Positions 1,365-43,823 of a stretch of DNA of 43,823 bases are shown one piece after another. A model generated the notes under the pieces. That model ran no database searches and was not told the DNA's origin. It was given only the letters and a program-made list of their open reading frames with translations. The stretch is from Octopus bimaculoides. Lineage: Eukaryota. Where the stretch lies: positions 58,785,880 through 58,829,702 of the forward strand of contig NC_068987.1 in the NCBI RefSeq assembly GCF_001194135.2, written 5' to 3'. The position numbers were made by a program, and so were the translations under genes. The first letter of the stretch is position 1, and the number at the start of each line of letters is the position of its first letter.

Positions 1365-1408
<44 letters not shown>
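1190..1408 (+). mobile_element. RTE-type 3' tail element followed by (TA)n
   Basis: aggaagggcatccagctgta...ccaacccat...gcatggaaagcagacattaaatgatga tail, many copies in the window. Confidence 0.7.
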
Positions 1409-1411
<3 letters not shown>

Positions 1412-1526
1412 TTAATTTATGTATATATTAACATTATCTTGGTTGAAAAACTTTGATAATGCAAATATGTTAATAGTTATCAGGGTAGCAAAAATAACAC
1501 AAAAACTGGGATATCATACCCGGTTA

Positions 1527-1912: not shown

Positions 1913-1950
<38 letters not shown>

Positions 1951-3424
1951 ATAAGGCATTCATCAATATTGATACTGAAGTGTGATAATTGATAGTTTAT
2001 GTATTATCACCAGTCTTGAGCACCTAAACCTGTACTTCTCAACAACCCCAATAGTACATATTTGTAGCTGCATATATACTATGCATCGCTATAAATGCAT
2101 ACTGTTGAGTAATGAAGTTTATTGGGCAACTCTGAGCTTTGTTAGCCTTTGCAGAGCTGAATTTACTGTCATGTGAATGTAATTGTAAAGAGAGGTTTCC
2201 GATTAGCTGATTTGACATCTAACAATAACCTGAGCCTTTTGTAGTTCTCCTGTATTCCAAATGATTATGAATGTGTATCACTTAATATAAGTGACTTGAG
2301 TATAATATCCAAGCCAGTGAAAGAGCCTCTGTGTCAGGCATGGGCAACATTTTTCAAGAAGTGGGCCACATGAGACATAGTTCATCATCAGGTGGAGCCA
2401 CACTCCTAAAAAGATTTGAAGGTAATTATTCATTAAGCATGCCATTCAGAAAGTATTGCAGGCCACAGTTTGCTCATGTTTGTCCTCTGGTTGTTCAATC
2501 TGCTTGAAATAGCAGCTAAATTCCTTCACATCACACCACTACTTTCTTATGGAAGGAAGGGACACATTTCTTGATAGTGTTCTAGGTATCTCTTACAAAG
2601 ACGGGTTGGTCACTGCTGGAATTGGTCATAACTGTTAAATCACTGCTGACCTGAGGCTAAGCAACAAGGATTCCTGTATCATATTGAGGGATGTATGGCA
2701 ACATCAATTTTACTGGGATTTGTGACTTCTTTTAAGGGCTTTCAGATTTCTGTTCTATTTTCTTTCTTATAAGCAGATTTTATATCAGCGTCGGTTTATT
2801 TCATTTTCAAATGTTATTCTATTTGGCTTTGAACTTTCTTTGCTTATTTTTAATTTTTTTTTTTGTTTTTTTAATCTATTCTCTCAAGTTTTCAGTGTAA
2901 ACTGATTTACCATATTTAATGAAAAAATACCAATAATAATCTTCAGTTTTTGTGATGATATATTCCCTTCCTCAAATACTTTAAATGTAACTTTATACAA
3001 GTTGTCATTCATGGCCCAAGGAGTAGCAAATTTTCACCACATACTTTAAAAATTCATGCACATTTATATTTATTATCAGTATCATAGTTAATACAAATTG
3101 TTTTTGCATATGTCTAGTTATTCTTGTATCAGGAAACATGAAAATATTACTTTAACAAAAGAAAAAAATTTTATTTCTTTGTTTATATTTTGAATCAATA
3201 AAAAAAATGTTTGAGATTTTTCTGCCTCTCATTGGAATGGGGCTTCAGCTTTAACACTAATGCTTTTTTGTTGAACTAACAAATTATGTATACAATATTT
3301 ATTAAAAAAAATATTTATAAAAAAAAAATTATTTTTGTTAAGAAAAAGGATTCCATCCCTTTTTAAGTGGGCGGGGCTTATACTAACCCTTTTTCCATTT
3401 TTTTTAAAAATAAAAAAACAAGTG

Positions 3425-3853
3425 CTGATGTAACTATGTGGTTAAGGAATTTGCTTCCCAACCATATGGTCTTGTGGTCAGTCTCCCTGTGCGACACCTT
3501 GGGCAGGTGTCTTCTAAAATTCCAGGTCAATCAAAGCCTTCTGAGTAGATTTGGTAAGCAGAAACTGAAAGAAGCCCATAGTGTGCATGTACGTACATAT
3601 GTGTGTGTGTGAGTGAATGTACATACCTTATGTCTTGACATTGTCTTGGTTGTAAACAAGCACTACTGTCATACAAGTGATGTTGTTCATTTCCAGTCTT
3701 CCATGAAAAACATGTCTGGCCATGGGAAAATATTACCTTGCATAGAAACGGGTAAGGGTTGGCGACAGGAGGAGCATCCAATCATAGAAAATCTGCCTTT
3801 ACAGATTCCATCTGACCCATGCAAGCATGGAAAAGTGGACGTTAAATGATGAC
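3425..3853 (+). mobile_element. Composite SINE family B1 (tRNA-like head, core, (TG)n, RTE-like tail)
   Basis: Similar to 6560-6978 and, inverted, to 7902-8315. Confidence 0.75.
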
Positions 3854-3933
3854 GAAACAAAAGAAAATAAAAAAAAGAGAGAGATTGTTCTAATATTCTG
3901 TATTTTTTTTCATTTTTATTTGCCAATTTTCAG

Positions 3934-4042
3934 ACCACAGAGGTTATGTAGAACCAGTCCAAAGACCCACTGATGGTACGACTGAATTTCACCCTTCTGG
4001 ACCAAATACTGAAGTTGAATATTTTTTTGCTTCTGATGCCAG
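3934..4042 (+). CDS. GFPT: GFAT exon: HRGYVEPVQRPTDGTTEFHPSGPNTEVEYFFASDA(S)
   Basis: tttcag| acceptor, AG|gtaaat donor; EVEYFFASDAS matches the GFAT motif; phase 1-2. Confidence 0.93.
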
Positions 4043-4815
4043 GTAAATATGTTTCTGAAATAATATAAAATATTTCCTGCCTACACTTTTGCAACCTCCC
4101 CCCCCCACCACACCTTCCACTACTCCTCCTACCTGAGGCGCCTCCTGGACACCTCATCACCACTGTTTATCTCCTCGGAGATACCACCAATTCATTCTCA
4201 TTCTCTTTCCTAAATGTGAGCAACCATGTAGCTCTTCTACATGATGAACCTGCTTTATCCCAACCTCTTACTTCATACCTTAACTCCTATCTAATATTAA
4301 AACACAACACCTTCACCCTCTTTGTCTTTGTAGGTTTGTGAGCAATAAGGTGACCTCAATAGTGCCAGTGACATGTAAAAAGCAAATAGTATGCACTGTA
4401 AAGTGGTTGGTGTTAGGAAGAGCATCTATCTGTAGAATCGATGCCAAAGCAAACAGTGGAGCATTGCTGTCTCCAAACTTTTGTTACTGTATATACGTAG
4501 ATGGATGTGTGTTGAATGATGGTAGGAGTTTTGAGGGACATGTGAGGGTGGGTGGGTATCATGGATAGTGTCTTCATAGAAAGACTGTATGATTTTTCTT
4601 ATTGCTATATTTTATTGATATTTTTCATTTTATGACACTCTATACCTTTCATTCTTATCTCTTGTATGCCATAAGAATAAAGAACTCATCCATAGACACA
4701 CTTATTCTCACACACATAAATAATATCCATATACTTGTATGCACATAAATACTTACATACATGACTGGCTGTATAATTGTATACACACATACATACCCTT
4801 ATATGGATATGTATA

Positions 4816-5241
4816 TGAGGGGGTACTGAAAAGTTCCTGGCTTTGGGTAAAAGAAAATCTTGGAGGATTAGTTAATTATGATTTTATTCAACAGTACCAC
4901 CTGACTGGCCTTCGTGTTGGTGGCACGTAAAAGCACCCACTACACTCTTGGAGTGGTTGGCATTAGGAAGGGCATCCAGCTGTAGAAACTCTGCCAAATC
5001 AGATTGGAGCCTGGTGTAGCCATCTAGTTCACCAGTCCTCAGTCAAATCGTCCAACCCATGCTAGCATGGAAAGCAGACGTTAAACAATGATGATGATGA
5101 TGATGATTCCCCTCTCAAATTCGCACACTTATTGCAGCAGTCCTTCAGTTTTTATAATCTTTATAAAAGTATATTGTTAAAGACCTCCAACCAGACCTTT
5201 AGCGATACCCTTAAAGCCAGAAACATTTCAGTGCCACCTTA
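4816..5241. mobile_element. Mariner-type MITE interrupted by an RTE-tail insertion (about 4896-5107)
   Basis: TA|tgagggggtactgaaaagttcctggctt ... aagccagaaacatttcagtgccacctta|TA imperfect 28-bp TIRs; the insert ends in (GAT)n. Confidence 0.75.
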
Positions 5242-5249
5242 TATATGTA

Positions 5250-5590
5250 AAGGGTAAAGAGCTCCTTTAGTCATGAATGACCATGGGATTGCAGCTAGAA
5301 AATTACCCCTGAAATACAAGTCTGAATAAGGTTGTTTATTGAAGACTAGAAGTCACCCGTACATACTAGCCTCCCCTTTCCATGCTACCGATGTTATCCA
5401 AGAGAAAGGAAAAGGCTGTTACAGCTTGGTACCAGTGATGTCACAACTCATTTCTACAGATGAGTGAATTGGAGCAACATGAAATAAAATATCCTGCTCA
5501 AAAACACAACACACACCCGGTCCAGAAATCAAACTCACTACTGCATGATTGTGAGCCTGATGCTCTAGCCACAGAGCTATATGCTTTCAC
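5250..5590 (-). mobile_element. tRNA-headed SINE
   Basis: Reverse strand shows A/B-box-like head tagctctgtggctagagc...gagtttgatttc; related heads at 19995 (+) and 29050-29195 (-). Confidence 0.55.
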
Positions 5591-6074
5591 TTGTATATGT
5601 ATATTTACATACACTCACACTCTAGTCTACCTATAATGATTCCAGAGTATACAAGTTCAGGGTTTGTAGTGGGGTTATTGGTATATCTTCAATATTATTT
5701 TTATGTTCACCAATACATACTTTCTATCCTATAAGTCTGTAAGAGTCATTCCAAAATAGACACAGAGCTAAAACCAGGTGAAGTAGAGAACAGTTGACCA
5801 CATCAACCATGGTACCTAATTGGAACGTTTTCCATTGAACTCATACCTGGCTACATATGTGTACTGGCAGAAGGATTAATGTCTGTGTGTTAGTAGCAAA
5901 AGCAGTGATGTCGTTCTTATTTCTTACATATTGGTTGTTCTGTTACATGTATGGTTTCATATATCTCTCACAAGGTTGCATCATGTGGATGAGGCAACAT
6001 TATGAATAAGTGAACAGGAATCACACTCCAGTTCTCTTGTCAGACAAACACAGATGCAAAACACACACACACAC

Positions 6075-6287
6075 ACACACACACATGCTCAGTTGGCAAA
6101 AATGAGTAGTACCTGTATTTCAAAAGGCCAGCCTTGTCACACTCTGTGTCATGCTGAATCGCTCTGAGAACTATATTAAAGATAGACGTGTCTGTGGAGT
6201 GCTCAGCCACTTGCACATTAATTTCACAAGCTGGCTGTTCTGTTGATTGGATCAATTGGAACCCTTGCCGTAACTGACGGAGTGCCA

Positions 6288-6290
<3 letters not shown>
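6075..6290 (+). mobile_element. SINE 3' part sharing the family A tail
   Basis: gccttgtcacact...gtggagtgctcagccacttgca...gacggagtgcc. Confidence 0.75.
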
Positions 6291-6318
<28 letters not shown>

Positions 6319-6342
6319 CGTGCATGTGTGTGTGATATATAT

Positions 6343-6406
6343 NNNNNNNNNNNNNNNNNNNNNNNNNNNNNNNNNNNNNNNNNNNNNNNNNNNNNNNNNN
6401 NNNNNN
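6343..6406. other. Assembly gap inside a (TA)n tract
   Basis: Run of N. Confidence 0.99.
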
Positions 6407-6439
<33 letters not shown>

Positions 6440-6444
<5 letters not shown>

Positions 6445-6555
6445 GACAGGCTTCTTTCAGTTTCCATCCACCAAATCCACTCACAAGGCTTTGGTTGACC
6501 CAAGACTATAGTAGAAAACATTTGCCCAAGATACCATGTAGTGGGTTTGAGTCCT
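6440..6555 (-). mobile_element. SINE family B core, reverse orientation
   Basis: ttctttcagtttcc...ccaaatccactcacaaggctttgg. Confidence 0.7.
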
Positions 6556-6559
6556 CTGT

Positions 6560-6976
6560 GTGTGTAGGTATGGCTGTATGGTAGGAAGTTTGCTTCTCAA
6601 CCACATAGTTCCAGGTTCAATCCCACTGCATGGCACTTGGAGTATGAGTCTTCTATAGCCCTGGATCGACCATAGTCTTGGGAGTGGATTTAGTAGATGA
6701 AAACTGAAAGTCTGTTGTATGTGTGTGTGTGTGTGTGTGAATGTCTCCTTGTCTTGACATCATGCAATAGTTGTAAATGAGGAGTGTCACCATCATGCAA
6801 ACGGTGTCCTTCATTTCTCAGTCTTCTGTAAAAACATGACTATTCATGGAAAAATATTACCTTCCTTAGAAATGGCTTGGTGTTGGCAACAGGAAGGGTG
6901 TCCAGCTGTAGAAAACCCGCTACAACAAATTCTATCTGATCTATGCAAGCATGGAAAAAGTTGCTGTTAAAACGAC

Positions 6977-6978
<2 letters not shown>
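6560..6978 (+). mobile_element. Composite SINE family B1
   Basis: Head, core, (TG)n, body and RTE-like tail ending aaacgacga directly before the acceptor poly-T. Confidence 0.75.
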
Positions 6979-7013
<35 letters not shown>

Positions 7014-7020
7014 TCTACAG

Positions 7021-7184
7021 TGCCATAATTGAACACACCAACAAAGTGATCTTCCTTGAGGATGATGATGTAGCTGCAGTTACTAATGGTTGTTTAACTA
7101 TTCATCGTATTAAGCGCAACTTGGATGATAACAAGGTCCGAGAAGTGATAACTTTGAAGATGGAAATTCAAGAAATCATGAAAG
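7021..7184 (+). CDS. GFPT: GFAT exon: (S)[54 protein letters not shown](G)
   Basis: poly-T...ctacag| acceptor, AAAG|gtgtgt donor; [14 protein letters not shown] motif; 164 nt, phase 2-1. Confidence 0.97.
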
Positions 7185-7901
7185 GTGTGTAAAAGAAATT
7201 GCATCCACTATAGTGACTCTCTAGATGTACACAACTTTAAAATGGTATCTTTGGTGTCTTTGTTTCTTTCCCTGATTCTCTTTCTCAGTATGTCTGTACG
7301 ATATGTAAAGTAACTGTATACACTATAGTGGTCATAGATACATACAACTTAAATGGTGTCTTTCTTGCTTTCTCTCTTTCTTTCTCTGTACATCTATCTT
7401 GTCTCTCTGTGTTTGTATGTTCATAAATACCTTTCTCTTCTTTTATCCTCTATTTTCTTCTAGTAGAAGATTGTTTTTATAGAAAAATAAACAATAAATC
7501 AGCAGATGTCTTGATCAGACCCCATTCCACAAGACAATCTCGACATCCAACAGAGATAATTGGATGCAAATGGTCAAGTCTTCTTAAATCCTATTAAACC
7601 TTGGGAGAGGCATTATGCCGGTAATAAACACACTCACTGGTTCGGTCCTTTATTTATTTATTTATAAACAGTAATCCTTATCAATGTGGCCAGCTTTGAC
7701 TCTGTATTAAAGCAAATAAGACGTTTGTTGCAATCAAAACAATAATCAAATGTTCTTCCTGGGCCATAAGCTTATGAGGCTAGTTTCCCAAATTCTGTGA
7801 CATATTCAACCATTGGTCACAGGATTTCAAGAAATAATCTAACTATCAGAGGCACAACACTCTGACCACTAAGCTTTGCACCTCCACACTTGTGACAATA
7901 G

Positions 7902-8581
<680 letters not shown>

Positions 8582-8689
8582 TAATATTTCCACTGCTAGA
8601 TTTTCATTTGACTGAATTAAATGGCCAAATAATTAAAACCATTTTTTTTTACTCAATAGGCTGTTGTTACTGTTTCTGCCTCTCTGTCT

Positions 8690-9665
8690 CTTTGTCACCC
8701 TCTAACCTTTCATCCTCTGACATGAGTTCCCTTCTTCAAATGCCCTTGCCCCTCTCATAATTCCTTGTCTTGCAAGTTACTTGATGACCCTGCCAGTGCT
8801 GGTGCCTTGTAAAAAGCATCCAGTCCACACTAAAGTGGTCGGCATTTGGAAGAGCATCCAGCTGTAATAATCATGCCAAAACTAACTTTGCCTGTGCTAG
8901 TGCCATGTAAAAAGCACTGAGTCCACTCTACAGAGTGCTTGGTGTTAGGAAGGGAATCCAACCGTAAAAACCCTGCCAAAACAGTGGCATAGGGTAGTTT
9001 GTTTGTTTTTTACCTGGCCAGCTCCTGTGAACTGTTCATGCATGCATAGAAGATGGACGTTAAACGATGATGATGATGATATATATGTGTATGAATAGCT
9101 GTGTTTGAACAGCTAAGCTACATGGACTGTGACTACTGAAGATCTGTGAATGCTTGAAAGAAACAAAACCAGTATGCTCTGCTGGGAGGGTAATGTCAGT
9201 GTGCATATACAACAGTGTAAGTGATTTGATAAAAAAAAAACTGGGTATACGAGACATCAGATGTAGTGTGCAAGAGAGAAGACTGCACTGATACAGTCAT
9301 GTAATGCATATGAAGACAGTTGCATTAAAAGGTGCTGATCTTTAATTGTAGGGGGAACAAGTGGAAGGGGTAGAAACAAGGAAGATGTGGGACGAAGTGA
9401 TTGGAACTCACAGAGGAGATGACGGGGGAACTGAGATTCCTAGAGGTTTGCTGTGCTAGAGAAGACATGCCAAGCTAAGTAAAAGCGTTGTCTTTGCAGA
9501 GAGGCTTGTCCCCTGCGTCCCTCTCCAGCTGAGTATTCCTGATCTTGCAGGCTCATGGGTGCTGGTGCCACATAAAAAGCACCTGTACTGGTGCTGTGTA
9601 AAAGCACCCAGTACACCCTGCTGTTTGGAAGGGCATCCAGCTGTAGAAACCATGCCAAAACAAGA
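8690..9665 (+). mobile_element. Two successive RTE LINE 3' fragments (3' UTR with (GAT)n tail; decayed ORF2 end plus UTR)
   Basis: 9180-9400 is similar to the intact RTE C-terminus at 43587-43823 (gtgcaagagagaagactgc..., ggaaggggtaga). Confidence 0.7.
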
Positions 9666-9976
9666 CATGTTTAGAATTTTTCAGATGTTTTACCTCATTT
9701 TTTTTTTTTCCGGTATTTACATCTATACACATTTCAGTTTGTTTGAACTTTTGTCTGGTGTCAGTTGGATCAGAACATTTTAAACCTTAATTTAGAAATA
9801 AAGGCTCCTTGTTCAAACCTAGTTGCTGCTAATATATGCATGAATAAAATGTTCTGATGATCTGCAATAAAACTTATTGAAACACATGTTGACACTGAAA
9901 AGTCATTTCACTTTTAAAAGCTTTCAAATTCTGTCTTAAGTGTATTCTTACATAAGTCCTTTATATTGATTATTGA

Positions 9977-10177
<201 letters not shown>

Positions 10178-10504
10178 TGAATATTTTATGAAGATATTTA
10201 TATGTATATTGATTAAATGAAATATTTATTTCACCCACTCACTTCTGCCAATTTATGACTGGATTACTCCTCTAGTATTTACAAACCTAAACTTTGCTAC
10301 AATCATTTTATCAAAGGAAAAGTGCATTACTTCATACTGCTATTTATCAAAGCTCTAAAAAAAAAACAAAAAAAAAGCATTGAAACAATATTCTTTCAAG
10401 ATTCTTCTTGCCTGAAACATCACCACCAAAAATATCATTGTCGTTATTTTAAAGCCTACTTTTCCAAACATCCATTGTCAGACAGAATTTGTTGAGATAT
10501 ATTT

Positions 10505-10668
10505 TCTATGGCCAGATGCTCTTCTTGTTGCCAACATTCACCTTTTTTTTTCCCAAGCAAGGTAACGTTTTTCCATGGCTGGATGTGTTCTGTAGAATAC
10601 TGGAAATGAAGGTTCATCACCTGTATGATGGTGACACTCGTTTACAATTATTGCATGATATCATGAAG

Positions 10669-10700
<32 letters not shown>

Positions 10701-10850
10701 TGGTGGTGTTATTTTCAGTCCTCCATAGAAACTTGTCCAACTGGGGACATATTACCTTGCTTTGAAATAAGTGAGGTTTGATGACAGGATGGGCATTTGC
10801 AAACATGGAAACATGGATTTTAAAATGATGATGGTGGTGGTGCTGATGGC
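10505..10850. mobile_element. Family B1 fragments in opposite orientations around (CA)n
   Basis: Body motifs ccaagcaaggtaa (-) and atattaccttgct (+). Confidence 0.55.
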
Positions 10851-11169
10851 AACTATAATTTGTATGATATATGTAAACTAGCTAATAAATCTGTCATTTT
10901 GAATGCACCATACAATAAAATGCACTCGGTTCTCTCTGTATGGAGGTTGGTGAACAAATAGAAACAACATAGAGCAGAAAAGACTCTAGTCTTTTCTGAA
11001 AACAAAGGATATCAAATCATAGAATCCACACAAAAACTATCATGGAGTGAAATTTGATCCCTAGTCCCCTCTAAGAAGATAGTAATTCCAAATAAAAACC
11101 AATTTGATCCTTGACAACCCATCCAACTTATGACAACATCCAAAAGCAGTCATAAAATGATGATGATGA

Positions 11170-11391
<222 letters not shown>

Positions 11392-11934
11392 TAATGCAAA
11401 ATAAGGGTTTATTTCATTTATTACTGAAACTATAGATGTGCGTCGTAATGTTATACCAATAAACTAAGTTTATCTATGGTGGTCTGTACATGCATCAGGT
11501 CTATTTGCAGTGGCTTCATCTGCATGTAATTCTGACGAAAATGTATTACTTCCTTTTTAACTCCTCCTTTTAGAAAAAAGGTTTTACTTCTAGCATGACT
11601 TGATATCTTTTATTGTTTTCTACTTTTAAAGAGTGATAGAGCGATGAGATTGAGCTACAGATCTGCCTACATCAATTGTGTAATGTTATCTCAATTAGTG
11701 ACTTGACTTTAATTCTTTTCAAATAAATTATAACACTTGAACAATAGTATAGTTTAATTTATGTAATGTAAAAAAGTGATGTTTGTTAATCTCAGTGTTG
11801 TTCAAATGTTTAAAAGATGTGTTTCTAATCTAGTGCAGCTTAGTTTATCTACTATAAAAACAGTGATGTTTGCTGTTCTCAATGATATTCAAAGTTTTAA
11901 CTGTCATTTCAATTTCTTGATTATTGTTTTCCAG

Positions 11935-12049
11935 GCTTACACTAGCCAATTTATTGCATTAGTTATGTTTGGTTTGATGATGTGCGAAGACCGAATTTCA
12001 ATGCAAGAGCGAAGAAAAGAAATTATTCAAGGACTCAAAAAACTTCCTG
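11935..12049 (+). CDS. GFPT: GFAT exon: [38 protein letters not shown](E)
   Basis: ttccag| acceptor, CTG|gtatgt donor; AYTSQ motif; 115 nt. Confidence 0.97.
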
Positions 12050-12157
12050 GTATGTAAAAGAATACCTTATAAATGAATGTACTGAATAAAGCTTCAGGTT
12101 AATTTAGTTTTACTTATGCTCTACTAGGTGTTTCTAACCATTATAGTTCTGTTCTAT

Positions 12158-12269
12158 ATTTAAGAGATGAGGAATTATTTACATTTGACTGGAGGGTATA
12201 TCAGCCGAAACGTTGTGTTAACAACAAACAAGATGAGGAGAAATATCCGTCAAATGTAAATAATGTAAA
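12158..12269. mobile_element. Short hairpin-ended insertion with target-site duplication
   Basis: 16-bp perfect IR attatttacatttgac/gtcaaatgtaaataat; flanking duplication cattatagttct at 12139-12150 and 12270-12281. Confidence 0.65.
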
Positions 12270-12408
12270 CATTATAGTTCTATCTCATGAAAAATCATGC
12301 AGAAGTGTCAATTAGATTAACAACTGTTTAATCAATAATTATTGAACTGTAAATCAATCAGTCATGTGCAATTAATCATTCCCCAACTTTTTTTTTTCTC
12401 TCTTCCAG

Positions 12409-12536
12409 AGGATATAAACGCAGTACTTAAATTAAATGATGAAATTCATTCATTAGCCCAAGAACTCTACCAACAGAAATCCCTTCTTGTCATGGGACGT
12501 GGTTACAATTTCTCTACTTGTTTGGAAGGAGCTTTG
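12409..12536 (+). CDS. GFPT: GFAT exon: [42 protein letters not shown]
   Basis: ttccag| acceptor, TTG|gtaaga donor; MGRGY...LEGAL motif; 128 nt. Confidence 0.97.
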
Positions 12537-12664
12537 GTAAGAGAGATTTTGTTAGCAATTATTGTACAGAATAACTATGAAAATATAATTTTATTATTAA
12601 ATGTAATTAACTCAAATTACTTTTAAGCTGTTTTTCATTTTCATTTTTTTTTTTCTTTGTTTAG

Positions 12665-12841
<177 letters not shown>

Positions 12842-13329
12842 TGAGCATCGTGGAAAAACTTATTCTTTACATAGTGATAGAAAAGACTGTGACACTCTGG
12901 AGTTGTTTGTTGTTGTCTTCATCGAACCCCATTGGATTTCAATTCGGCTGTACAGATTAAAAGGGCATTCAGTTGTATTGTACTCCCTTTTGTTAAGGGT
13001 AATAAGCACTACTTTTTCATGGTATATATTTACTGTTATGTTGTGGGTTAAGATAATTAGTTAAATGTCTTGATCAGTGACATACTACAACAGTGGTTTT
13101 AGAATCAAGCATGGATTCTTCAGCTGGTGTTTTTGAACTTGCCAGACCCAAAATTCTCAGACATTATTAAAGTATGTAAACCCTGTAGATACTAAAAACG
13201 TTGCCATTGATTTTATCATGTTAATGTAGCTTAAGCTCCTCCTAGGCTTAGTTTTATAAAGGTGCTTGAACATGTTTAATATCAACTGTTTTGTTTCATT
13301 GTCAGTAATTAAGCTATTTAATTAGTATG

Positions 13330-13770
13330 AAGTAGAGTTAGCTGGGAGAGAAAACAGTATTGAATTCTATAATTTGTATGGAGCAGAGATACTTGGGAGA
13401 GGAAGCAGCTGAAATGAAAGATCAGTATATCTTGTTGAGTTCAGTGGGAACTGTGTTTTCTGTTAAAGAGAATAAAGAAAATGTATATGTGTGACAAATA
13501 TGGCAGATATGAGAATCAGTACAGTGTCAGGCAAATTTCCTTGCAGTGTTTACTTATATTCTGAGAAGAAAACCCACTGAAATTGATTGTTTTTGTCCTG
13601 AAATTACTACAATAAATACCCTTGTTATGGAGATAGTTTGATCACATCCCAATAAGGAAAATATCCTTATGTTAATGTCAAAGATTATTGTGTTTGGGAA
13701 GGCAAAACAAAAGCATGAGCACTGGATTAAACATCTAAAAGTAGTTAGTGTTGCTATATTCAAATCTCCT
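13330..13770 (+). mobile_element. Possible highly decayed RTE reverse-transcriptase fragment
   Basis: Broken frame LYGAE...SGKFPCSV...LKVVS resembles RTE LYADD...SGKWPCS...LEVV; many stops. Confidence 0.35.
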
Positions 13771-14137
13771 TTTAACATTCACCACCATAACTAATTTATG
13801 GTCTTATGCTAATCATTGTGTTGTTGTTGTTGTTGTTTAGTCTCATGTACATACTGATGCAACAGGTTTGTGATCAAAGATGTTCCATTTGCAGTACTTC
13901 CAAGATCATATTATCCAACGTGTCTTCCTCCTTTTTAAGAGAGTAGGGTGTGATTTGATGGCGGTTTAGCTGCTACTTATAGCAGGTTGTGCAACCATGC
14001 AGAGCTTTCTCATTGCCAATCATTAATTACTTGACTGGTATAATTATTTTGCTCTTCCTTTCATCTCACTCTGCTTCTCTTGCTGGTGTTCCAGTTTACA
14101 AATGATAATTTTATTTTTGTACTTTTCTTTATTTCAG

Positions 14138-14176
14138 AAATGCATGAACGCTCTACAGCAAGTAAAGGCACGACAT
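14138..14176 (+). CDS. GFPT: GFAT small exon: KCMNALQQVKARH
   Basis: tttcag| acceptor, CAT|gtaagt donor; matches KCxNALQQVxAR; 39 nt, phase 0-0. Confidence 0.95.
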
Positions 14177-14489
14177 GTAAGTAGTATGTCACCTCCTGGG
14201 TAGCATGTGTATTTTTGTATATTTTGTTTTCTGTTACAGTTATAGAATAATAGTGTCCTTGGTTATGTTTCTGGTGAGCCAGTCACTGGATCACTATATT
14301 TCTGATGGCCAAAGTGACAAAGGAGTGTCTGTAGTTCACTGTTGAACAAATATTTGAAGGGATTTCTCTTGATGGGCACGTTCTATGTGGTTTTTGTACC
14401 AATGAACATCAATGAAAGATTACATACAATATATAGATGTATGTGTTTCTCTAATGTCATGCAGTATTTGTTGTAGTTTTTTTGCATTC

Positions 14490-15250
14490 TGAGTTCAAAT
14501 CCTACTGAAGTCAAGTTTGCCTGTTGTGACTGAGAAAAACTACTAGAGTGATTTAATCAACTAAACCTCTCACCCCAAAATTCCAGGAAGAAGGCGGAAA
14601 GCTAGCAAAATCATTAGTATGCAGGATGAGATGCTTAGCAGTACTTTACCTGTCGCTACATTCAGAGTTCAAATTCCACTGAGGTTGACTTTACCTTTTA
14701 TCTTTTCAGGGTCAATAAAATAGGTACCAGTTGATGCAATCAACTCATTCCTTCCCCCAAAATTGCTGCCCTTGTGGCAAAATTTGAAACCATTATTATT
14801 ATTATGAAGTCAAATTCCACTGAGGTCGACTTTGCCTTTCATCCTTTCGGGGTCAATAAATTAAGTACCAATGAAACACTGAAGTCAATGTAATCCACTA
14901 GTCCGCTCCCCCAAAATTTCAGGCCTTGTGCCTATAGCAGAAAGGATTATTATTATTATTAAGGTGGCCAGCTGACAGAATTGTTAACATGCTGGGCAAG
15001 ATGCTTAGCAGTATTTTGTCTGTCTTCATGCTCTGAGTTCAAATTTTAATGAAATCAACTTTGCTTTCATCCTTTTGGGGGTCAATAAATTAAGTACCAG
15101 TGGTTGATGTAATTGATTAGTCCCTTCCCAAAATTTCAGGTCTGTGTCTTTAGTAGAAAGGATTATTATTATGAAGGTAGTAATCTAGTAGAATTGTTAA
15201 TATGCTGGACAAAATGCTCGACAAGATTTATCTGTCTTTATGTTCTGAGT
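14490..15250 (+). mobile_element. Head-to-tail run of 4-5 family C SINE copies
   Basis: Repeated ctgagttcaaat / cctttcggggtcaataaa units; the three internal units end in (ATT)n. Confidence 0.8.
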
Positions 15251-15471
15251 CTGTGCCATGGGCTTCGCAGATTTTCCTATACTATAATCAGATAGTGATA
15301 GACAACTGACAGTAATATATTTTCTTCACTGCTTTGCTGTAACATTTTCTGTAAGCTTTTGTTTTTTTTTTTCTTTTTTCTCATTCTTACTTTGTTTTAA
15401 TTTATTTTATATTATGTGGAATGTAAATGTTATTTCATTTTCTAAATTTGCTTTTATTTTGCGTTTTCTAG

Positions 15472-15633
15472 GGTGATTTGATTGTTATTTGCAACTCTGG
15501 TGACACAGAAACCCAAAGTCAGGTGAAGAAGTTCATTGCTGTACCACATACAATCGACTGCTTACAAGGAATTCTTACTATAATTCCCTTACAGCTTCTT
15601 TCCTTACATATTGCTGAAAAACGTAACTGTGAT
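15472..15633 (+). CDS. GFPT: GFAT exon: GDLIVICNSGDTETQSQVKKFIAVPHTIDCLQGILTIIPLQLLSLHIAEKRNCD
   Basis: ttctag| acceptor, GAT|gtaagc donor; DCLQGIL..IPLQLL motif; 162 nt, ends in phase 0. Confidence 0.97.
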
Positions 15634-23275: not shown

Positions 23276-24230
23276 CCACCGTAACACGCATAATGGTGTG
23301 TGTATGTGTACACATGCATATATATATATATATGTATGTATATCTGATCTTCTTGTGTAGACATGACCTTTGTAGTATAAAAAATATTGGGGATTATGCC
23401 AGCATGGATAATGGACATTAAATGAAGATGATGATGACGATGATAGATCGGCCCAGCCATTTTTATACGGGTTAATACAAAAGTATTTGTTCCTCTCCAG
23501 AGGCAAAAAGAGGAACTCAAATTCAACTGATACATTTATTGACTATCATTCCAAACCCTACTGCATTTCACATGGAATAGTTGGTCCTCCAAAATCGTCT
23601 TGGTGTATATGTTGACCAATGATTTTTGGCTGTAAAGTTTGACCTAAAGAATTCCACTTGTATGCAGAAAAATGCAGTACTAAATGATGCAAGTGCTAAA
23701 GCTTTGAAAGACAATACAGTGGCTGAAATGATAATGCTGCGTTAATTATCTTTATAATATTTAGTTTTATTATTCCATATTCTAAGTTTTAATATCATAG
23801 CTATCCATTAAATAAGCACCAACATAGTACAAGTTATTCCAACCACATTATCCATCTTTGTGCTCCATTAAAAATGCTTGGAGTTACTGAATAAGTAGAA
23901 GAGTGGAAAATATGTCAAAGTATTGAGTTTTGTTTCTTAATGTTTTAAACTAAAATCACACTATTTTAGGTTAATAACAACTCCTAACATATAATACTAT
24001 TTCACTGTATCCTTCTTCTTTAAATATAATAATCCTTGTGCTAATGAGAGAAATTATTAACACCATTATTCATATTTTTATTTATTTAAAATATCAAATC
24101 AGAAGTTAATAAACACGTGTAAGCACAATTTGCTTTCTGTTGAGAAATTGGACATCTATATTCACTTAAGTTTTGAACTCGCCTTTAACTATTTAGTTCA
24201 AGGGAGATAACTACTAACTTTCTCTTCTAG

Positions 24231-24275
24231 GTTGACTGCCCCCGGAACCTAGCAAAGAGTGTTACAGTGGAGTAA
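24231..24275 (+). CDS. GFPT: GFAT canonical last coding exon: VDCPRNLAKSVTVE*
   Basis: tctcttctag| acceptor; invariant GFAT/GlmS C-tail PRNLAKSVTVE, stop TAA. Confidence 0.98.
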   Translation, partial: VDCPRNLAKSVTVE

Positions 24276-24295
24276 ATGATGCCTCAGAGACCAAT

Positions 24296-24301
24296 GTAAG
24301 C
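24296..24301 (+). promoter_or_regulatory. 5' splice donor 20 nt after the GFAT stop codon
   Basis: AAT|GTAAGC, the same hexamer as the donor after exon 15472-15633. Confidence 0.7.
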
Positions 24302-24317
24302 AGTGTAAATCTCTTAG

Positions 24318-24323
24318 AATAAA
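24318..24323 (+). promoter_or_regulatory. Candidate proximal polyadenylation signal
   Basis: AATAAA 43 nt after the stop, followed by U-rich sequence; the hexamer is common in AT-rich DNA. Confidence 0.45.
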
Positions 24324-25809
24324 ACTAATATATTTTAGTAATTTATTAGAGTCTTAAAATATTTATATTATTTCTTTTAGTTCATGTTTAGTGTATCTTG
24401 GCTGCAGTTTTAAATCTTGCTTTTGTTTCATTTCTCTTTTTTTTTTTTTTTTTTGCTTCACTATAAGCATTTCAAAAGTAACTTATACTTAAACATCATT
24501 TATACTTACCTCATGTTAAAAAAAAAAAAAAAAAAATTCTGAAAAATTCTCAACAATTTTTCTTTGTTCAGTTGACTTATGTCAAGACCCATTCTTTATG
24601 CCTTCCTTTTAAGAAACCTTTGTTCTAAAATATAAGCTTCAAAACCATAGAAAATTTAGTGCATCACATTTAGTTTTTTTAAAATTTTCTGCTTTGTTCC
24701 TCTGCTTATCTTTTACTTTATTGTCTGTAAATCTTTAATATCCTTCTATTTGTTTCACATCATCAAAGATGTGTGAAATAAATTATCCCTTACTTGAAAA
24801 AAAACAAAAAAAAACAGGTATGGTTAGCTACAGGAAGGGTATGAAGCTGTAAAACAATGCCTCAAGGATATAAACTTCTAACTCCTGCTTGCATGGAAAA
24901 ACAGACATAAAACAAATGATTGATTTTTCAGTCATTTATGCCATTTCCATATTGCCTTGTTATTCCCCACTCAGATTTCTTTGCATTTCTATAATACCTC
25001 GGTGTTTTCCAGGATATATATATATCTTCTTAACTTGCTTCCTGTATCTTTTTAGAAATATATTCTCCTTAATTTGTAGGCAGTAAAAGGTCTACAACCT
25101 AAAATGTATCTCTGCTTGTCATACCTCCATTTCAGTTGTGACACATCTCTCAGTCTGCTTTTTTAAATGAAGATTGAAATTTTTGCTTTTTTGTTTGTTA
25201 ATTTTGTTCCACTTCCCCTCTGTAGGAGGCAATGTTGTCTAGGTTCTTTTGTCCATGAATCTTAGCCTCATCTGATTACATGGGTGTGTAATGTTATACA
25301 TGTGTCTGTATCTGCTTTATATAATTGTAAAGCAATAGATTCATTTATTGGCAGTCAAAACACATGCATGTAAAGCTGTGGGGAAGGCATCCCTTCTAGG
25401 AGAGTGATATGTACTAGTCATATTGTTTAAGTGCATATGTAAATATATGTGCATAACTATCCAGATATATTCTTTTACCCTTCTAGATAATAGTTGTTTA
25501 ATTCTGGATCAGGCCAGATTGAACTGATCTAAATTCAAAAACAAATGCAACCTTAACCTTTCGTTGAACACCTTACCTCACATGCTCCCTCCATAGATTG
25601 AAAATTATTTTCATTTATAGAAACTTGTTATCTCTACTACTGTTGTTAGTAATTTATAAAATAAGAAATAGTTCATCTTATATCAGTACAGGTAAAAAAT
25701 ACAGAATTAGTTTGTCTCCTTTTTCTCTTCTCTTATGTACCACTGGAAAAAAAAATTGTTTACATCTGATTTGATTGGCTTCATACTCTTGCTTGATGGA
25801 GCTAGGGTC

Positions 25810-31141: not shown

Positions 31142-31352
31142 CTCTTTAGCATTGCAAATGACTCTTCCAAATGCGGTGCTTGTGTATTCACATTGTTTTG
31201 AATTAATCATGCATTATTTCATAGTTTGGAGATGTTGATGGTGTGTTTTTTAGAATTAAATTGTAGGGTAAGTGTGAGAAGTTAGACCTGACCAGTTTGA
31301 AATTATAGATAGAATATTTGGGCTGGATATTATCAGTTTGAATGCTAAAGAG
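31142..31352 (+). mobile_element. piggyBac-type MITE
   Basis: ctttagcatt...aatgctaaagag|TTAA. Confidence 0.7.
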
Positions 31353-31444
31353 TTAATTGCTTTCATTTCTATTTTTACTGCTTTCTGTCTTCTTCCAATC
31401 TGTTGTAGTGCACCTTTGGACTGTATACAATAAGTTAATTGTTG

Positions 31445-31801: not shown

Positions 31802-33018
31802 CACCCAAAAGCACGCTAATAGCTTAGGAGTGAAATTTAGGATTTCTCATTTTTCTGTGAATCAATTTTGATAAAACTTTCCCCAACTGGTCTACACAGT
31901 GTGAACCGTTGTTATGTTGTCATTATTCTGTGTAATGTCCTTTTTTTATTTCAGATTCTTCAGTTTTGGGGTGAACCACACTAATAGCTTTTGAATGAAA
32001 ATAGCCCATCTAGACAATTTTCTTTTTTCAGAAAATGAAGGGTAATAATACGTATTAAGCATACATTGAGTATATATTTAACAGCAAACCATAATATTAG
32101 AACATTTATTGACATAATGAATTGTTTAGCCACATAAGCACCATTTTGACGGATAACTTCAAAAATCCTGTAAGTCATAGAATCTGTCAATTTCTTAATG
32201 GTAGCAGGTTGGACTGCCTCTGCTGCAGCTTTGAGAGGTTGCCCATAAGACATTTTTCGACATAAACATCTTGTTTAATGATGGACCAAAGATTTTCGAT
32301 AGGGTGAGATCTGGAGGTGCTGGTTGCCACTCCATCAACCTTTCACCTTGTATGCCATAAGACCCTAGTAATGTTTGGGTGGTCCTAGCAGAGTGGGAGG
32401 GAGCATTGTTATGCTTGAATATGAGATTCCTTACAAGTAACAGCAGCATGTTATCTAGCCAGGGATCCAAGACCAGTAGGTGGTTGCAGTCATTTTAACC
32501 CCTTCAAGCACCCTGACTGGACCAACAAGTCCACAACACGATCCCTCTACCCTGTTGTTGATGGTGAAAATGGCTTTGCTTTTTTGTTCAGGTTTCCCAT
32601 GTAACCTGCGACCAGTATTCCTGAAATCCCTAGCTGTCACAGTCTTGGGGGTCCCATTAGATCATTTCTTCCTTGGGGAAGGGTCCTTCAGGAATTGTTT
32701 GAACGTGTCCACAGGAGCTGACTTCTCCAAGGTGGCATGAAGAGAGGTGCCTTTAGCACTTTTCTTGATGATGACAGACTTTTTTTTCATCATTAAATCC
32801 TTTTCCATGTCCCATTGTTCTTAGAGAGGAAAGACGCTATTAGCGTGGTTCACCCAAAAACTAAAGAATAAAAATGGATCTTACACGGAATAATGAAAAC
32901 ATAACTATGGTGTTCCCATAGTGTGCAAACCAGCTGGATAAAGTTTTACCAAAATTGATACTCAGAAAACCGAGAAATCCTAAATTTCACTCCTAAGCTA
33001 TCAGCGTGGTTCTGGGTG
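31802..33018 (-). mobile_element. Tc1-family transposon, internally deleted and frameshifted
   Basis: TA|cacccaaaagcacgctaatagcttaggagtg...cactcctaagctatcagcgtggttctgggtg|TA with about 100-bp TIRs; transposase remnants NNAPSHSAR, W(Q)PAPPDL, IKKLTDSM. Confidence 0.9.
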
Positions 33019-33249: not shown

Positions 33250-33580
33250 CTGTTTCTTATTCTATAGTTCTCTTTTGCTGAACTGCTATTGTAGGGAGAC
33301 ATGAACAAACCAGCACCAGTTGTCAAGTGGTGGTGGACAAACATGCAATTTTTTTCTTTTCTTTCAATCTGAAGCTGAGTGTTTTGTCTGCAACTTCAGT
33401 TTCATGCCTCTCATGTAGATATTTACAGTGGGCTTACAGTTTCCATCTACCAAATTCATTCATAAGACATAGATCAGCCCAGGGCTATAGTAGAAGACAC
33501 GTGCCCAAAATGCTGTGGAGTGGGACAGAACCTAAGACTACGTGGTTGAAAAATGAGCTTCTTAACCACACAACCATGTC
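33250..33580 (-). mobile_element. Family B2 SINE, reverse orientation
   Basis: Motif match. Confidence 0.7.
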
Positions 33581-33982: not shown

Positions 33983-34244
33983 TTATTTTCCTTGAAAATA
34001 ATGAAAAATACATTAACTTTTGTCAAAAAATTCAGCTGATACAATGATAGCACTTATTTATTTAAGCAAGCTCTGTGGCTCCTTTTGATAGTCAGTAGCA
34101 AACTATTAAATTAGACAGCTAGCCAAATATGTTCTTTTAATAAGTTTTCAGCCTGTTATAATTTTGCATTCCATAGATCACTATTTCTTACACTATAAGT
34201 TATTGCAAATGCTAACAATATTCTCATTCAGTAAATATTCATTG

Positions 34245-34725
34245 GCACAGACATGACTGGATAATGAAGTGCTTGCTTACTTCCCCACCACATAGTTCTG
34301 GGTTCAGTCCTTTTACGTGGCATCTTGAGCAAGTGTCTTCTACTATAGCCCTGGGCCAACAAAATCTTGTCAGTTGATTTGGTAGATGGAAAGTAAGAGA
34401 AGCCTGTCATATACTAAGAACATTTTGATTCAGCTCCATGCAGCTGAGTTTCATAGGCTTGTCATAGAAATTTAGCTCGGTTTGTAATACAAAATGTTAA
34501 GTTGCATGGAGCCAAATCAAACTGTTATTAATAGATCTTATATGTAACTCCTATCAAATGTGTTGAGTGATTGTTTTTTTTCGTTTGTTCGCTCGTGTAT
34601 GTTCTATTTGTCCCCCACCCACTTGACAATGGGTGTTGGTTTGTTTACATCCCCTTAACTTAGCAGTTTGACAAAAGAGAACAATGGATTAATTGTCTTT
34701 CAAGGCAGTAGTCCAATGACTGAAA
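34245..34725 (+). mobile_element. Family B2 SINE interrupted by a small IR element (34415-34530)
   Basis: Head and core at 34245-34410, 3' part at 34585-34725; IR taagaacattttgattcagctccatgcagct/agttgcatggagccaaatcaaactgttatta. Confidence 0.65.
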
Positions 34726-34878
34726 GAAGTGAAAGATAAATGATAAAAACTATCTCTTATACTATAAGCTATTGTGAATGCTAACAATAATTTTGTTCAG
34801 TAAATATTCAAACGCATTTTTTTTATGTTATTCGGTTTTATAATGTTTCTCTTTTTTTCTTCTTTTTCCTTCCAACAG

Positions 34879-34920
34879 ACTGACCAGCCACGACACTTAC
34901 TGAAGAGCTACACACACTAA
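34879..34920 (+). CDS. GFPT: Alternative GFAT terminal coding exon: TDQPRHLLKSYTH*
   Basis: Long polypyrimidine tract ending ccttccaacag|. The phase-0 frame shares D-x-P-R-x-L-x-K-S-x-T with the canonical tail. Confidence 0.85.
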   Translation, partial: TDQPRHLLKSYTH

Positions 34921-36800
34921 AGGCTTTAACAGAAATGAGCTTTTTTCTTTTTTTATCTTGTTAAAGGAACTCCTCTAACCTAACATCTAGTAATTCTTGA
35001 TCGGCTTACTGCCCCATATATATATATATGTATTCCAGATATGGACAAATTATTTTTTTGCTATGAGTTTACATCTAACCAGTTCTCAAATTCGGTAATT
35101 CATTAAACCTTGGAATTTATATTGGTTTTTTTTTTTTTTCTGTCTTTTAGAAAAAAAGGGAAGGATAGGAATTTATTATCATCAGTGTAGCTTTTGGATG
35201 CAGAGCTTGATTTCTTTGGCTATTATGTGGCTCACTGTTCTCTTGTGCAGATGTTTTCATCCAATAGTAAAGTGAAAAATTCTTTAACACTTTACTTGAT
35301 TTCAGATGTCAAATGAATAACCTTGTTTTTCTGTTTCCAAACTTATGGACGTTAAACACTAATGAGAAGCTCTTATAACGTTAGTCTTTATTTTTTTACC
35401 AGGTGAGAGTGTACATGGTTGCTTGATAGCTTAGAAATAGCAGCCAAACCTCCGTTGTGTCACCAATGCAATGACGTGAAACACATTTTGACAGATAAAC
35501 ATGAGACATGTAACCTTGTGTATGGTCGCTTGACTTGCTAGAAATAGCAGTTAAATCTCCTTCAAATCCCACTACTGTCTTACAGAAAGGACACATTAAA
35601 TAATGTAGTCCTACATGCTCTGTTTCAATAAAACATAGGTCACAACTAGAATGCCTTTTACCCACTGGCTTCCTTGATAAAGGTTGACTTGGGATGACTA
35701 AACAACTGTCAAAGTCAAAATATATGGAAATGGTACATACTGTTGCTCATGGTATCCTATCAAGGGTTTTGTGTTTTTTTTATTCATTTCTTTATTACTT
35801 ACCCACAAGCATAAAAATTGACTAAAATAAAAGGAAAAAAAAAACTTTTTTCCCCTCCCCTCAAAGTTTGATTTGGTTTCTACTCATATGTGAGTATGGT
35901 TTCCATATTCACATACATCTTATAAAATATGGTTCTGTAACTACAAATTTTTTTCTTCATAGCTAATGGTGACCTCTTACTTCTTTTCAAATGTGCGTTA
36001 ACTTTAAACCTATACACATCAATGTTTTCAGTACCTTTTAAATGTTTTTGTATCAAGAAATATAAATATATATAATGTGATTTAATTTAGGGGACCAAAG
36101 TGAATACATTAAATTACTAAGACTTACCTTAGTTATATACTGAATATATATACATATATATACCTTAAACTACTGTATACTATTTAATTTATTATTTTGG
36201 ATGCAAAGTGGAGTTTGAATTGGTTATATACAATACATACAATCACATGTCTACATTGTCAACTGTTAAATATTTTTGTGTGTGGATAATTAATTTCTTT
36301 TGACTTATACTAAACTGTTGATAACTGCTTTCTGTTAAAACTGTTTTATGGTTTATGTGTGTTTCTTTGTAACAGTTGGTTTTATTTAATTGTCTATATT
36401 TGTTTTTTGTTGAAATTTTTATTTTTATCTTGAATGTTGCTCGTCAACCTTCACAAACTTCAATCAAGTAAATTATTTACTCACACATATTTCCACATGG
36501 GTCATATAACATATCTGCTAAAATTCGGCTTCAATTTTGGTTTTGTTTGTTTTTTTATTTTTTGTATCCCTCTGTCCATTTTATCAATCTATCATAGTTT
36601 CATTTCATGCAATTTGACTAAATTTGGAACCATACTTTTGTAAATAATTTCCTATTTGAATTTGTGATGGTATAAAAGCATACATTTACTTTTGAGGATT
36701 TTTCTTTTATTTACAAAAAGAAAAGACAATTTCTATATGATTCCATCCTGAAGTAACGCAATGATCTATATATAATGAATAAAATTTATTGATAGAAAAT
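34921..36800 (+). other. Probable long distal 3' UTR
   Basis: AT/U-rich and repeat-poor; AATAAA at 35627-35632 and 36778-36783. Confidence 0.55.
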
Positions 36801-41320: not shown

Positions 41321-41465
41321 TATAATCATAAATATACAGGGATTAGCAGTAGCCTGCTTCTCCAACATACTGAGAATTCAGAAATAGTTCTTTGACTGCT
41401 ATTTCTGAATTCTCAGTATGTTGGAGAAGCAGGCTACTGCTAATCCCTGTATATTTATGATTATA
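41321..41465. repeat. Perfect inverted repeat, 67-bp arms, 11-nt loop
   Basis: 41321-41387 is the exact reverse complement of 41399-41465. Confidence 0.95.
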
Positions 41466-41524
41466 TATATATATATATATATATGTATATGTATGTATAT
41501 ATACATATATATATATATATAAGG

Positions 41525-41860
41525 AGTGAAGTTTGAGCCTGATCGTGCCATTTTTCTTTCTGGCTTTATACTGTAAGCATAGCCACTAGCAATGTGCACC
41601 AAAGAAGAACAAAGAGCAGTGATTCGAGAGATGGTAATGTTGAACCAGTTCACCATTACCATCTCTCGAGCTTGCTGAATCTTTTTGTCAGTGATGAAGG
41701 TTGACAGGTGTCCTGCTCCCTCTTCAAGTGTCATGTATGTTTGTCTGGCCATTTTTAAACTTCTTGATCCACTCATACACCAATCGAGTTTCCAGATTAT
41801 CCTTACAGTTTTGGCCAATTACACTCGAGACTGTTCAAAGCTGGCTAGCCCCAAAAATCT
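41525..41860 (-). mobile_element. Mariner transposase N-terminal (HTH) remnant
   Basis: Frame ...LEEGAGHLSTFITDKKIQQAREMVMVN..ITI resembles mariner EDxxRSGRPSTxxTxxxIxxxxxxVxxNRRITI. Confidence 0.6.
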
Positions 41861-43295: not shown

Positions 43296-43586
43296 CCTAT
43301 ATATTTATTTTTCTTTTCAAAAATGTATACCAGAATAATTTCCAGTGTTTTATACTCCATGTCATTTTAGTACATGGTTAAAAGGAATGCCATTTCCTCA
43401 AATAATATACATATAAATAATAATAACAAACCTTGAATATGGTGATGCATCTTATCAGCCAACAAATACTGGAAGTGTTTACAAATGTTTTATACATTTC
43501 ATTTCATACACACACATGCACATCACATCATATACTATATAAACATGCCAGCTTTGCTGTAGCAACAGTCTTGATTTAATTTAATC

Positions 43587-43823
43587 CAGGACATACGTAA
43601 GCTCGCAAGGAATGAAGCCAGTATGCTCCGTTGGATGTGTAATGTCAATGTGAATACCCGTCAGAGTGTAAGTATCTTGAGAGAAAAGCTGAACATTAGA
43701 AGCATCAGTTGTGGCGTGCAAGAGAGACGATTGCGCTGGTATGGACATGTGGTGAGAATGGAGGAGGATAGCTGCGTGAAAAAGTGTCACACCCTAACAG
43801 TTGAGGGAACCCGTGGAAGAGGT
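43587..43823 (+). mobile_element. 5'-truncated RTE-clade LINE, intact ORF2 C-terminal segment running off the window
   Basis: Stop-free DIRKLARNEASMLRWMCNV...LREKLNIRSISCGVQERRLRWYGHVVRMEEDSCVKKCHTLTVEGTRGRG; RLRWYGHV and GxRxRG are RTE motifs. Confidence 0.9.

Follow-up and report, generated by a model that had tools for sequence, protein, structure and literature searches.

The C-terminal tail of GFAT (EC 2.6.1.16; glutamine:fructose-6-phosphate aminotransferase) sits at the junction of ammonia channelling, sugar binding and interdomain signalling. The enzyme carries out the first step in making amino sugars and chitin. Two mutants of E. coli GlmS, A602L and V605L, were reportedly built to probe the walls of the channel. 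The C-loop of human GFAT1 (residues 670-681) lies over the sugar pocket and packs against Tyr35 and Trp96; Thr679 has a part in hydrolysing glutamine, and activity suffers when tags are placed at the termini (PMC7000685). Trp74 and residues of the C-tail form a hydrophobic channel that prevents leakage of ammonia, Trp93 of human GFAT2 contacts Leu675 and Ala676, and the human enzymes are only ~50% efficient in ammonia transfer (PMC7948480). The C-tail of Candida Gfa1p is also part of the channel, and binding of UDP-GlcNAc changes the dynamics of the C-tail in simulations (PMC3224219). The part of that paper that cites Olchowy 2007 reports that the last four residues of Gfa1p, Val709, Thr710, Val711 and Glu712 (VTVE), are crucial for interdomain communication and that their deletion disrupts it. 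The nearest known counterparts of the tail described below are the canonical C-tails of E. coli GlmS (residues 595-608), human GFAT1 (670-681) and Candida Gfa1p (695-712).

Vertebrates make a muscle splice variant of GFPT1, GFAT1-L, which carries an 18-residue insert in a loop of the glutaminase domain and has altered kinetics or regulation. Here we describe a natural variant of this well-known enzyme that has a different C-tail and stems from a real, ancient alternative last exon. As in GFAT1-L, alternative splicing of GFAT would yield a variant of the enzyme. The two cases differ in that the cassette exon of GFAT1-L lies in a flexible loop, at a distance from the C-tail, whereas in octopus the terminal exon itself would be swapped, by an alternative last exon combined with alternative polyadenylation.

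Two terminal exons in one GFAT gene

The window (the whole stretch of Octopus bimaculoides DNA that was analysed, 43,823 nucleotides) is AT-rich, and its introns are long. A GFAT gene runs along its + strand, with the 3' two-thirds inside the window. Exons were mapped from GT-AG boundaries and by tblastn with homologues, which gave 10 coding exons at 3934-15633; the exons for the N-terminal glutaminase domain lie upstream, and none was seen inside the window. The mapped exons are as follows.

3934-4042, + strand: GFAT coding exon, the first in the window, ..DHRGYVEPVQRPTDGTTEFHPSGPNTEVEYFFASDA-; splice model and match to XP_014778461.1
7021-7184, + strand: GFAT coding exon; tblastn and splice model
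8367-8560, + strand: GFAT coding exon, in which SIS domain 1 starts; splice model and Pfam
10040-10160, + strand: GFAT coding exon; tblastn and splice model
11201-11358, + strand: GFAT coding exon; tblastn and splice model
11935-12049, + strand: GFAT coding exon; tblastn and splice model
12409-12536, + strand: GFAT coding exon, SIS domain 2; tblastn and splice model
12665-12793, + strand: GFAT coding exon; tblastn and splice model
14138-14176, + strand: GFAT exon of 13 codons, KCMNALQQVKARH; tblastn and splice model
15472-15633, + strand: penultimate coding exon, type A, ..PLQLLSLHIAEKRNCD; ends in phase 0 and is followed by the donor GTAAGC

Downstream of these exons lie two alternative ends of the gene.

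24231-24275, + strand: canonical terminal coding exon, VDCPRNLAKSVTVE and TAA; isoform X1, XP_014778460.1
24318-24323, + strand: AATAAA behind the canonical exon, putative proximal poly(A) signal, inside a block conserved in Argonauta
34846-34878, + strand: polypyrimidine tract (34846-34873, 28 nt) and AG acceptor (34877-34878) of the alternative exon
34879-34920, + strand: alternative terminal coding exon, TDQPRHLLKSYTH and TAA; isoform X2, XP_014778461.1
36633-36792, + strand: conserved non-coding island, 160 nt, AT-rich, collinear with 70697-70868 of the Argonauta locus L003 (76%, E=4e-27)

The penultimate exon, 88% conserved between the window and Argonauta, ends at 15633 with AEKRNCD followed by gtaagc, and this donor is common to both terminal exons. 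Its end in phase 0 lets either terminal exon follow in frame. A branch-point-like TACTAAC and an acceptor lie directly upstream of the canonical exon, and the block 24200-24370, which comprises this exon and the start of its UTR, aligns with Argonauta. Another 10.6 kb downstream lies the alternative exon. It has its own 3' splice site, is in phase 0 like the canonical exon and has its own stop. Its codons are ACT GAC CAG CCA CGA CAC TTA CTG AAG AGC TAC ACA CAC TAA, that is, 13 codons and a TAA at 34918-34920; the last eight codons (HLLKSYTH) and the stop occupy 34894-34920.

Possible poly(A) signals (ATTAAA or AATAAA) follow the alternative exon at 35102, 35595, 35627, 35826, 36108 and 36778. 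The last of these, an AATAAA, falls within the conserved island, 1.7 kb downstream of the alternative stop. This island probably represents the distal end of the 3' UTR and the poly(A) site of the alternative isoform.

In the spliced product of the window, Pfam SIS (sugar isomerase, PF01380) was matched in two stretches (E=1.6e-66), as expected of a C-terminal isomerase module with two SIS domains. Spliced to the alternative tail, the product matches RefSeq XP_014778461.1 with 100% identity across 452 aa; this protein has 677 aa and is named 'GFAT 2 isoform X2 [Octopus bimaculoides]'. The X2 protein also matches GATase_6/7/4 of Pfam. Isoform X1 (XP_014778460.1, 678 aa) has the canonical tail and starts with MCGIF, in which the initiator Met is followed by the Cys of a class-II (Ntn) glutaminase; apart from the C-tail, X2 does not differ from X1. 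Both are present in UniProt. The alternative GFAT tail proposed by the initial annotation thus corresponds to an isoform that is already in the databases, where the sequences are public and machine-annotated. Literature searches for this isoform in molluscs turned up no account of the alternative tail or of its conservation, and the tail is absent from a 2025 review of GFAT (PMC12847842). What is a real addition to the existing annotation is the depth of conservation of the exon.

RefSeq and other annotation models join the penultimate exon to the alternative exon in many species. The full-length Logan transcript contigs that we inspected (from cuttlefish or squid, and from oyster) all carried the canonical tail, so that the alternative isoform might be a minor one or confined to certain tissues. 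A profile search focused on the tail, run against 5.8 billion proteins, gave just two ORFs, both genomic read-throughs of the penultimate exon and neither of them informative. A 40-position profile of the alternative tail, run against 1.84 billion cluster representatives, gave no tail of the alternative type among the best 150 matches; because isoforms are hidden within 50% clusters, this result is uninformative on the distribution of the tail. The representative library did contain a 93-aa fragment (P0446) with another non-canonical tail, ..VDQPRALSKIVTSE (A602S, S604I, V607S).

The alternative and canonical tails share 7 of 14 residues. A shuffling test gave an expectation of 0.19 matches of at least 7/14 per shuffled window, so that the similarity alone makes a weak case. 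That the match is non-random follows from the combination of the same strand, the exact exon boundary, the phase, the homologous stop, conservation across species and the identity with XP_014778461.1.

The locus is one gene with two alternative ends, not two genes: the window holds a single set of GFAT exons and two terminal exons. It is extremely improbable that the alternative exon belongs instead, as its last exon, to a neighbouring GFAT paralogue or pseudogene outside this transcription unit. Searches by tblastn with several GFATs found no other GFAT-like exon at 24.3-43.8 kb or in the rest of the window, the RefSeq models join the exon to the shared upstream exons, and in oyster and annelids it comes only 0.3-0.9 kb after the canonical exon (see below). 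Subfunctionalised paralogues are conceivable, as sacoglossans have a fast-evolving locus with the alternative exon only, but for this window a separate paralogue is effectively refuted.

The window also contains repeats. A 62-nt direct repeat (34180-34241 and 34749-34810, 85% identity) flanks a SINE-like element directly upstream of the alternative acceptor, and inverted arms lie nearby at 33477-33558 and 34275-34356. Related SINE-like copies are spread across the window in both orientations. Three ORFs, at 32198-32494 (- strand), 41402-41818 (- strand) and 43575-43823 (+ strand), look like possible remnants of mariner-type transposases and LINE reverse transcriptases; none of them had a significant match in Pfam.

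Residues of the alternative tail

The chains of E. coli GlmS in PDB entries 1JXA and 2J6H (608 residues) end in ...VDQPRNLAKSVTVE, residues 595-608. The alternative tail aligns with residues 595-607, with its lysine at position 603. In GlmS numbering, the octopus tail has N600H, A602L, V605Y and V607H, keeps L601, K603, S604 and T606, and lacks E608. This is the residue mapping that the initial annotation had given, and the PDB chains bear it out. A review that uses E. coli numbering likewise lists Leu601, Ala602, Lys603, Ser604 and Val605.

The octopus tail resembles the canonical one in position, in length (13 versus 14 residues), in its exon boundary and in being attached to an otherwise identical enzyme. 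The context of the catalytic Lys603, D-x-P-R-x-L-x-K, is present: D596, P598, R599, L601 and K603 are shared with the canonical tail, in octopus together with S604 and T606, the latter corresponding to T679 of human GFAT1. The residues of the canonical channel and of interdomain communication, A602, V605, V607 and E608 (in the motif LAKSVTVE), are missing from the alternative tail, whereas the canonical exon of the same octopus gene has the full motif. The alternative tail thereby changes or loses three of the four VTVE-equivalent residues, as well as the Ala that contacts the gating Trp. Among the animal sequences examined, the canonical tail does not vary, and that of E. coli GlmS is nearly the same.

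The initial annotation had placed A602 and V605 in the ammonia channel. This agrees with the literature cited above, which puts the C-tail in the channel, where it closes the sugar site and packs on the equivalent of Trp74. Structure prediction did not discriminate between the tails: AlphaFold2 models of X2 and X1, built from 53-sequence alignments, had mean pLDDT values of 64 and 70, respectively, and the tail scored below 50 in both.

Conservation and taxonomic spread

In Argonauta, the penultimate exon is followed by the canonical exon and, 5.2 kb later, by the alternative exon. The alternative exons of Octopus and Argonauta differ at 3 of 42 nt; all three changes are synonymous and none is non-synonymous. 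Upstream of the exon, the introns of the two species are unalignable except for the pyrimidine tract and the AG. When the 3' regions of the two species were compared by blastn, only four collinear conserved islands appeared. Three of them are exons (the penultimate one, the canonical one together with the start of its UTR, and the alternative one); the fourth is 36633-36792. Changes that are exclusively synonymous, amid intron and UTR flanks that cannot be aligned, show purifying selection on the alternative exon.

The tandem order, canonical and then alternative, recurs in Argonauta, in the oyster Crassostrea angulata and in the annelids Ridgeia and Capitella. The oyster and annelid loci have two penultimate exons, A and then B, followed by the canonical and then the alternative terminal exon; the alternative exon comes only 0.3-0.9 kb after the canonical one, and in Capitella it is without annotation. 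Annotated alternative tails were found in Octopus sinensis, O. vulgaris, a chiton, Patella, Pomacea, Littorina, Babylonia, Gigantopelta (a neomphaline), Biomphalaria, Bulinus, Arion, Elysia and Plakobranchus, in the bivalves Pecten, Magallana, Mercenaria, Mytilus, Dreissena and Mya, and, in divergent form, in the brachiopod Lingula. By group, they cover octopods, a chiton, patellogastropods, caenogastropods, a neomphaline, heterobranchs and many bivalves.

Among ~25 distinct alternative tails, D596, P598, R599, L601, L602 and K603 are invariant and residue 605 is always Tyr or His; for K603 and for D596, P598, R599 and L601 the invariance extends over molluscs and annelids, and Lingula departs from it. 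Position 600 is variable (H, S, A, G or N), as is position 604 (T, S, V or I). T606 is mostly kept, V607 is replaced by His, Ser or another residue, and Glu608 is usually absent. Two claims of the initial annotation bear on these positions. It had stated that S604 is kept, which holds for octopus and fails for the exon family, in which T, V or I also occur. It had also singled out 602 and 605, and these turn out to be the conserved differences from the canonical tail, so that selection is acting on residues that it named.

Between phyla, synonymous sites are saturated, and D596, P598, R599, L601, L602, K603 and Tyr/His605 persist. The canonical exon has no amino-acid change in any pair of animals; the alternative exon has 0-5 per pair, all outside its own invariant core. 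The pattern of substitutions indicates that the alternative exon is constrained to a consensus of its own. Frame, acceptor, phase and stop are intact at all seven loci compared (two cephalopods, two gastropods, one bivalve and two annelids), and the exon shows none of the features of a pseudo-exon: frame disruption, loss of splice sites or neutral divergence.

These data leave it very improbable that the exon lacks a function in octopus, whether as the decaying remnant of a former exon duplication or as an artefact of annotation that is spliced only as noise. Such an origin would account for the Logan contigs, among which the alternative tail was not seen, for the match of just 7/14 to the canonical tail, and for a brachiopod copy that has lost K603: the alternative tail of Lingula anatina isoform X4 (P0289), IEHPGGLLEVHTS, carries K603E and R599G. 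It would not account for the intact frame, acceptor, phase and stop at 7/7 loci, for the synonymous-only changes between Octopus and Argonauta beside unalignable flanks, for a conserved signature of its own (L602 with Tyr or His at 605), or for independent annotation by several projects. The substitutions in Lingula suggest either that the conserved role may be non-catalytic there or that the exon is decaying in that lineage.

Outside Lophotrochozoa, no alternative tail was present among the annotated isoforms seen, which came from ticks and a scorpion (at most 15 cluster members each), from horseshoe crabs (three members) and from insects; the absence is one of annotated isoforms only. Three nemertean isoforms were all canonical. 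In Priapulus, the locus has one penultimate exon, with no terminal exon found within 10 kb, and is thus uninformative as an outgroup. Given the canonical isoforms of ticks, scorpion, horseshoe crabs, insects and nemerteans, the alternative exon looks lophotrochozoan, and it apparently predates the split between molluscs and annelids.

Lophotrochozoan GFAT genes have a second exon pair. Tandem alternative penultimate exons encode type A (..LS[LM]HIA[EQT]..) and type B (..LSFHIAVLRG[YF]D) versions, with coordinates, for A and B respectively, of 31264-31425 and 31826-31987 in locus L005, 36648-36809 and 37457-37618 in L004, and 13712-13873 and 13977-14138 in L006. Octopus (window 15472-15633) and Argonauta have type A only, and a search of the window found no type-B penultimate exon. 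A decapodiform transcript (P0489) contains type B, Lingula has three penultimate variants, and the Ridgeia model P0174 wrongly contains the A and B copies in series. Like the terminal pair, the A and B exons belong to the same gene, originated by tandem exon duplication and occur in the same taxa; unlike it, they are mutually exclusive internal exons and encode the last helix of the isomerase domain. In Pomacea, all four combinations of A or B with the canonical or alternative tail are annotated.

Isoform X1 of O. sinensis differs in yet another place. A 9-residue insert, GSAKDSDSP, lies between ..VLYSK and DHRGY in a loop of the glutaminase domain and is independent of the choice of tail. We take this to be the region in which vertebrate GFAT1-L carries its insert. 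A matching micro-exon was not found in the searched part of the window (1-3933, with an N gap at ~1540-1900).

Coupling of the two active sites

We consider the best overall explanation, with a probability of about 0.6, to be an alternative last exon that has been kept by selection and gives an isoform with altered coupling. The terminal exon would have been duplicated in tandem in a lophotrochozoan ancestor and maintained since then under purifying selection. To form X1, the donor at 15633 would be spliced to the proximal acceptor at 24231, with polyadenylation at 24318. To form X2, the canonical exon would be skipped and the presumed proximal poly(A) site bypassed, and the same donor would be joined to the distal acceptor at 34879. 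With the scaffold of D596, P598, R599 and L601 and with K603 retained, the X2 tail should still close over fructose-6-P. The residues lining the channel and packing on the glutaminase domain are replaced (A602 by Leu, V605 by Tyr, or by His in other taxa, and V607 by His, with E608 lost), so that the Trp74-gated ammonia channel may form differently and the coupling of glutamine hydrolysis to sugar amination may be altered. The likeliest outcome would be an isoform of lower flux or with different gating, which could also form mixed assemblies with canonical subunits.

Altered coupling is plausible since the C-tail lies in the ammonia channel and its last four residues are needed in Candida Gfa1p. 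Because three of the four VTVE residues and the Trp-contacting Ala are changed, and because these changes are conserved, altered coupling of glutamine hydrolysis and sugar amination is, on our analysis, the most likely consequence. The same residues are perturbed by A602L and V605L in GlmS and by deletion of the last four residues of Gfa1p (Olchowy et al. 2007, Biochem J 404:121). Those are laboratory mutants, whereas the alternative tail is a naturally selected replacement of several residues at once. The kinetic change could go towards better or towards worse coupling. GFAT is tetrameric, and effects in mixed oligomers are therefore possible.

A stronger version, which we regard as doubtful, is that the tail makes GFAT a functionally different enzyme or subunit, in which Leu602 and Tyr/His605, together with His600 and His607, plug or re-line the channel. 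Three modes of action can be envisaged under this reading: a flux-damping subunit in mixed tetramers; an enzyme that is mainly an isomerase or a glutaminase; or a synthase that uses free NH4+/NH3, for which the His-lined pores of Amt/Rh channels offer a loose analogy. If this were true, the synthesis of hexosamines and chitin would have, in this exon, a control point specific to lophotrochozoans.

The alternative tail is of interest as a natural experiment on the coupling of two active sites in class-II amidotransferases. Molluscs, annelids and a brachiopod keep a second tail beside the canonical one, and the conserved differences between the two fall on residues that line the channel or serve communication. 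Animals with shells, radulae, beaks and chaetae might have in it a further, unrecognised means of controlling the flux into hexosamines and chitin. Should the isoform prove kinetically ordinary, the finding would be that of an annotated splice variant and no more.

The alternative-tail isoform could instead be a fully competent GlcN-6-P synthase, with coupling unbroken, in which the tail alters regulation or efficiency; we hold this to be possible, if on balance unlikely. Examples would be a tighter seal with less leakage of ammonia, altered inhibition by the product or by UDP-GlcNAc, or sensitivity to pH or metals through the His and Tyr residues, and such an enzyme might be used where the demand for hexosamine or chitin differs. 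The invariance of K603, D596, P598, R599 and L601 in molluscs and annelids is in keeping with full competence, as is T606, mostly kept and equivalent to the human Thr that takes part in glutamine hydrolysis. An efficiency of ~50% in the human GFATs leaves room for a better-sealed variant, and the shift in C-tail dynamics upon UDP-GlcNAc binding in simulations would suit a regulatory role. Three of the four interdomain-communication residues are nevertheless changed or lost, and a canonical tail that is invariant in the animals examined and near-identical in E. coli suggests little tolerance for change.

Sacoglossan loci also speak for a competent synthase, as they have this tail only. The GFAT loci of Plakobranchus (L001, 14666-16480) and Elysia (L002, 8952-10468) contain a terminal exon of the alternative type, and, small N gaps excepted, a canonical exon was not found in the last intron or in the 10 kb downstream at either locus. 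If such a locus is the sole GFAT of sacoglossans, the enzyme with the alternative tail must make GlcN-6-P there, which would argue against strong uncoupling. The sacoglossan protein is 77% identical to those of other heterobranchs, compared with 88-89% among those heterobranchs, and has changes in an otherwise invariant 12-residue motif; being so unusually divergent, the gene may be a specialised paralogue.
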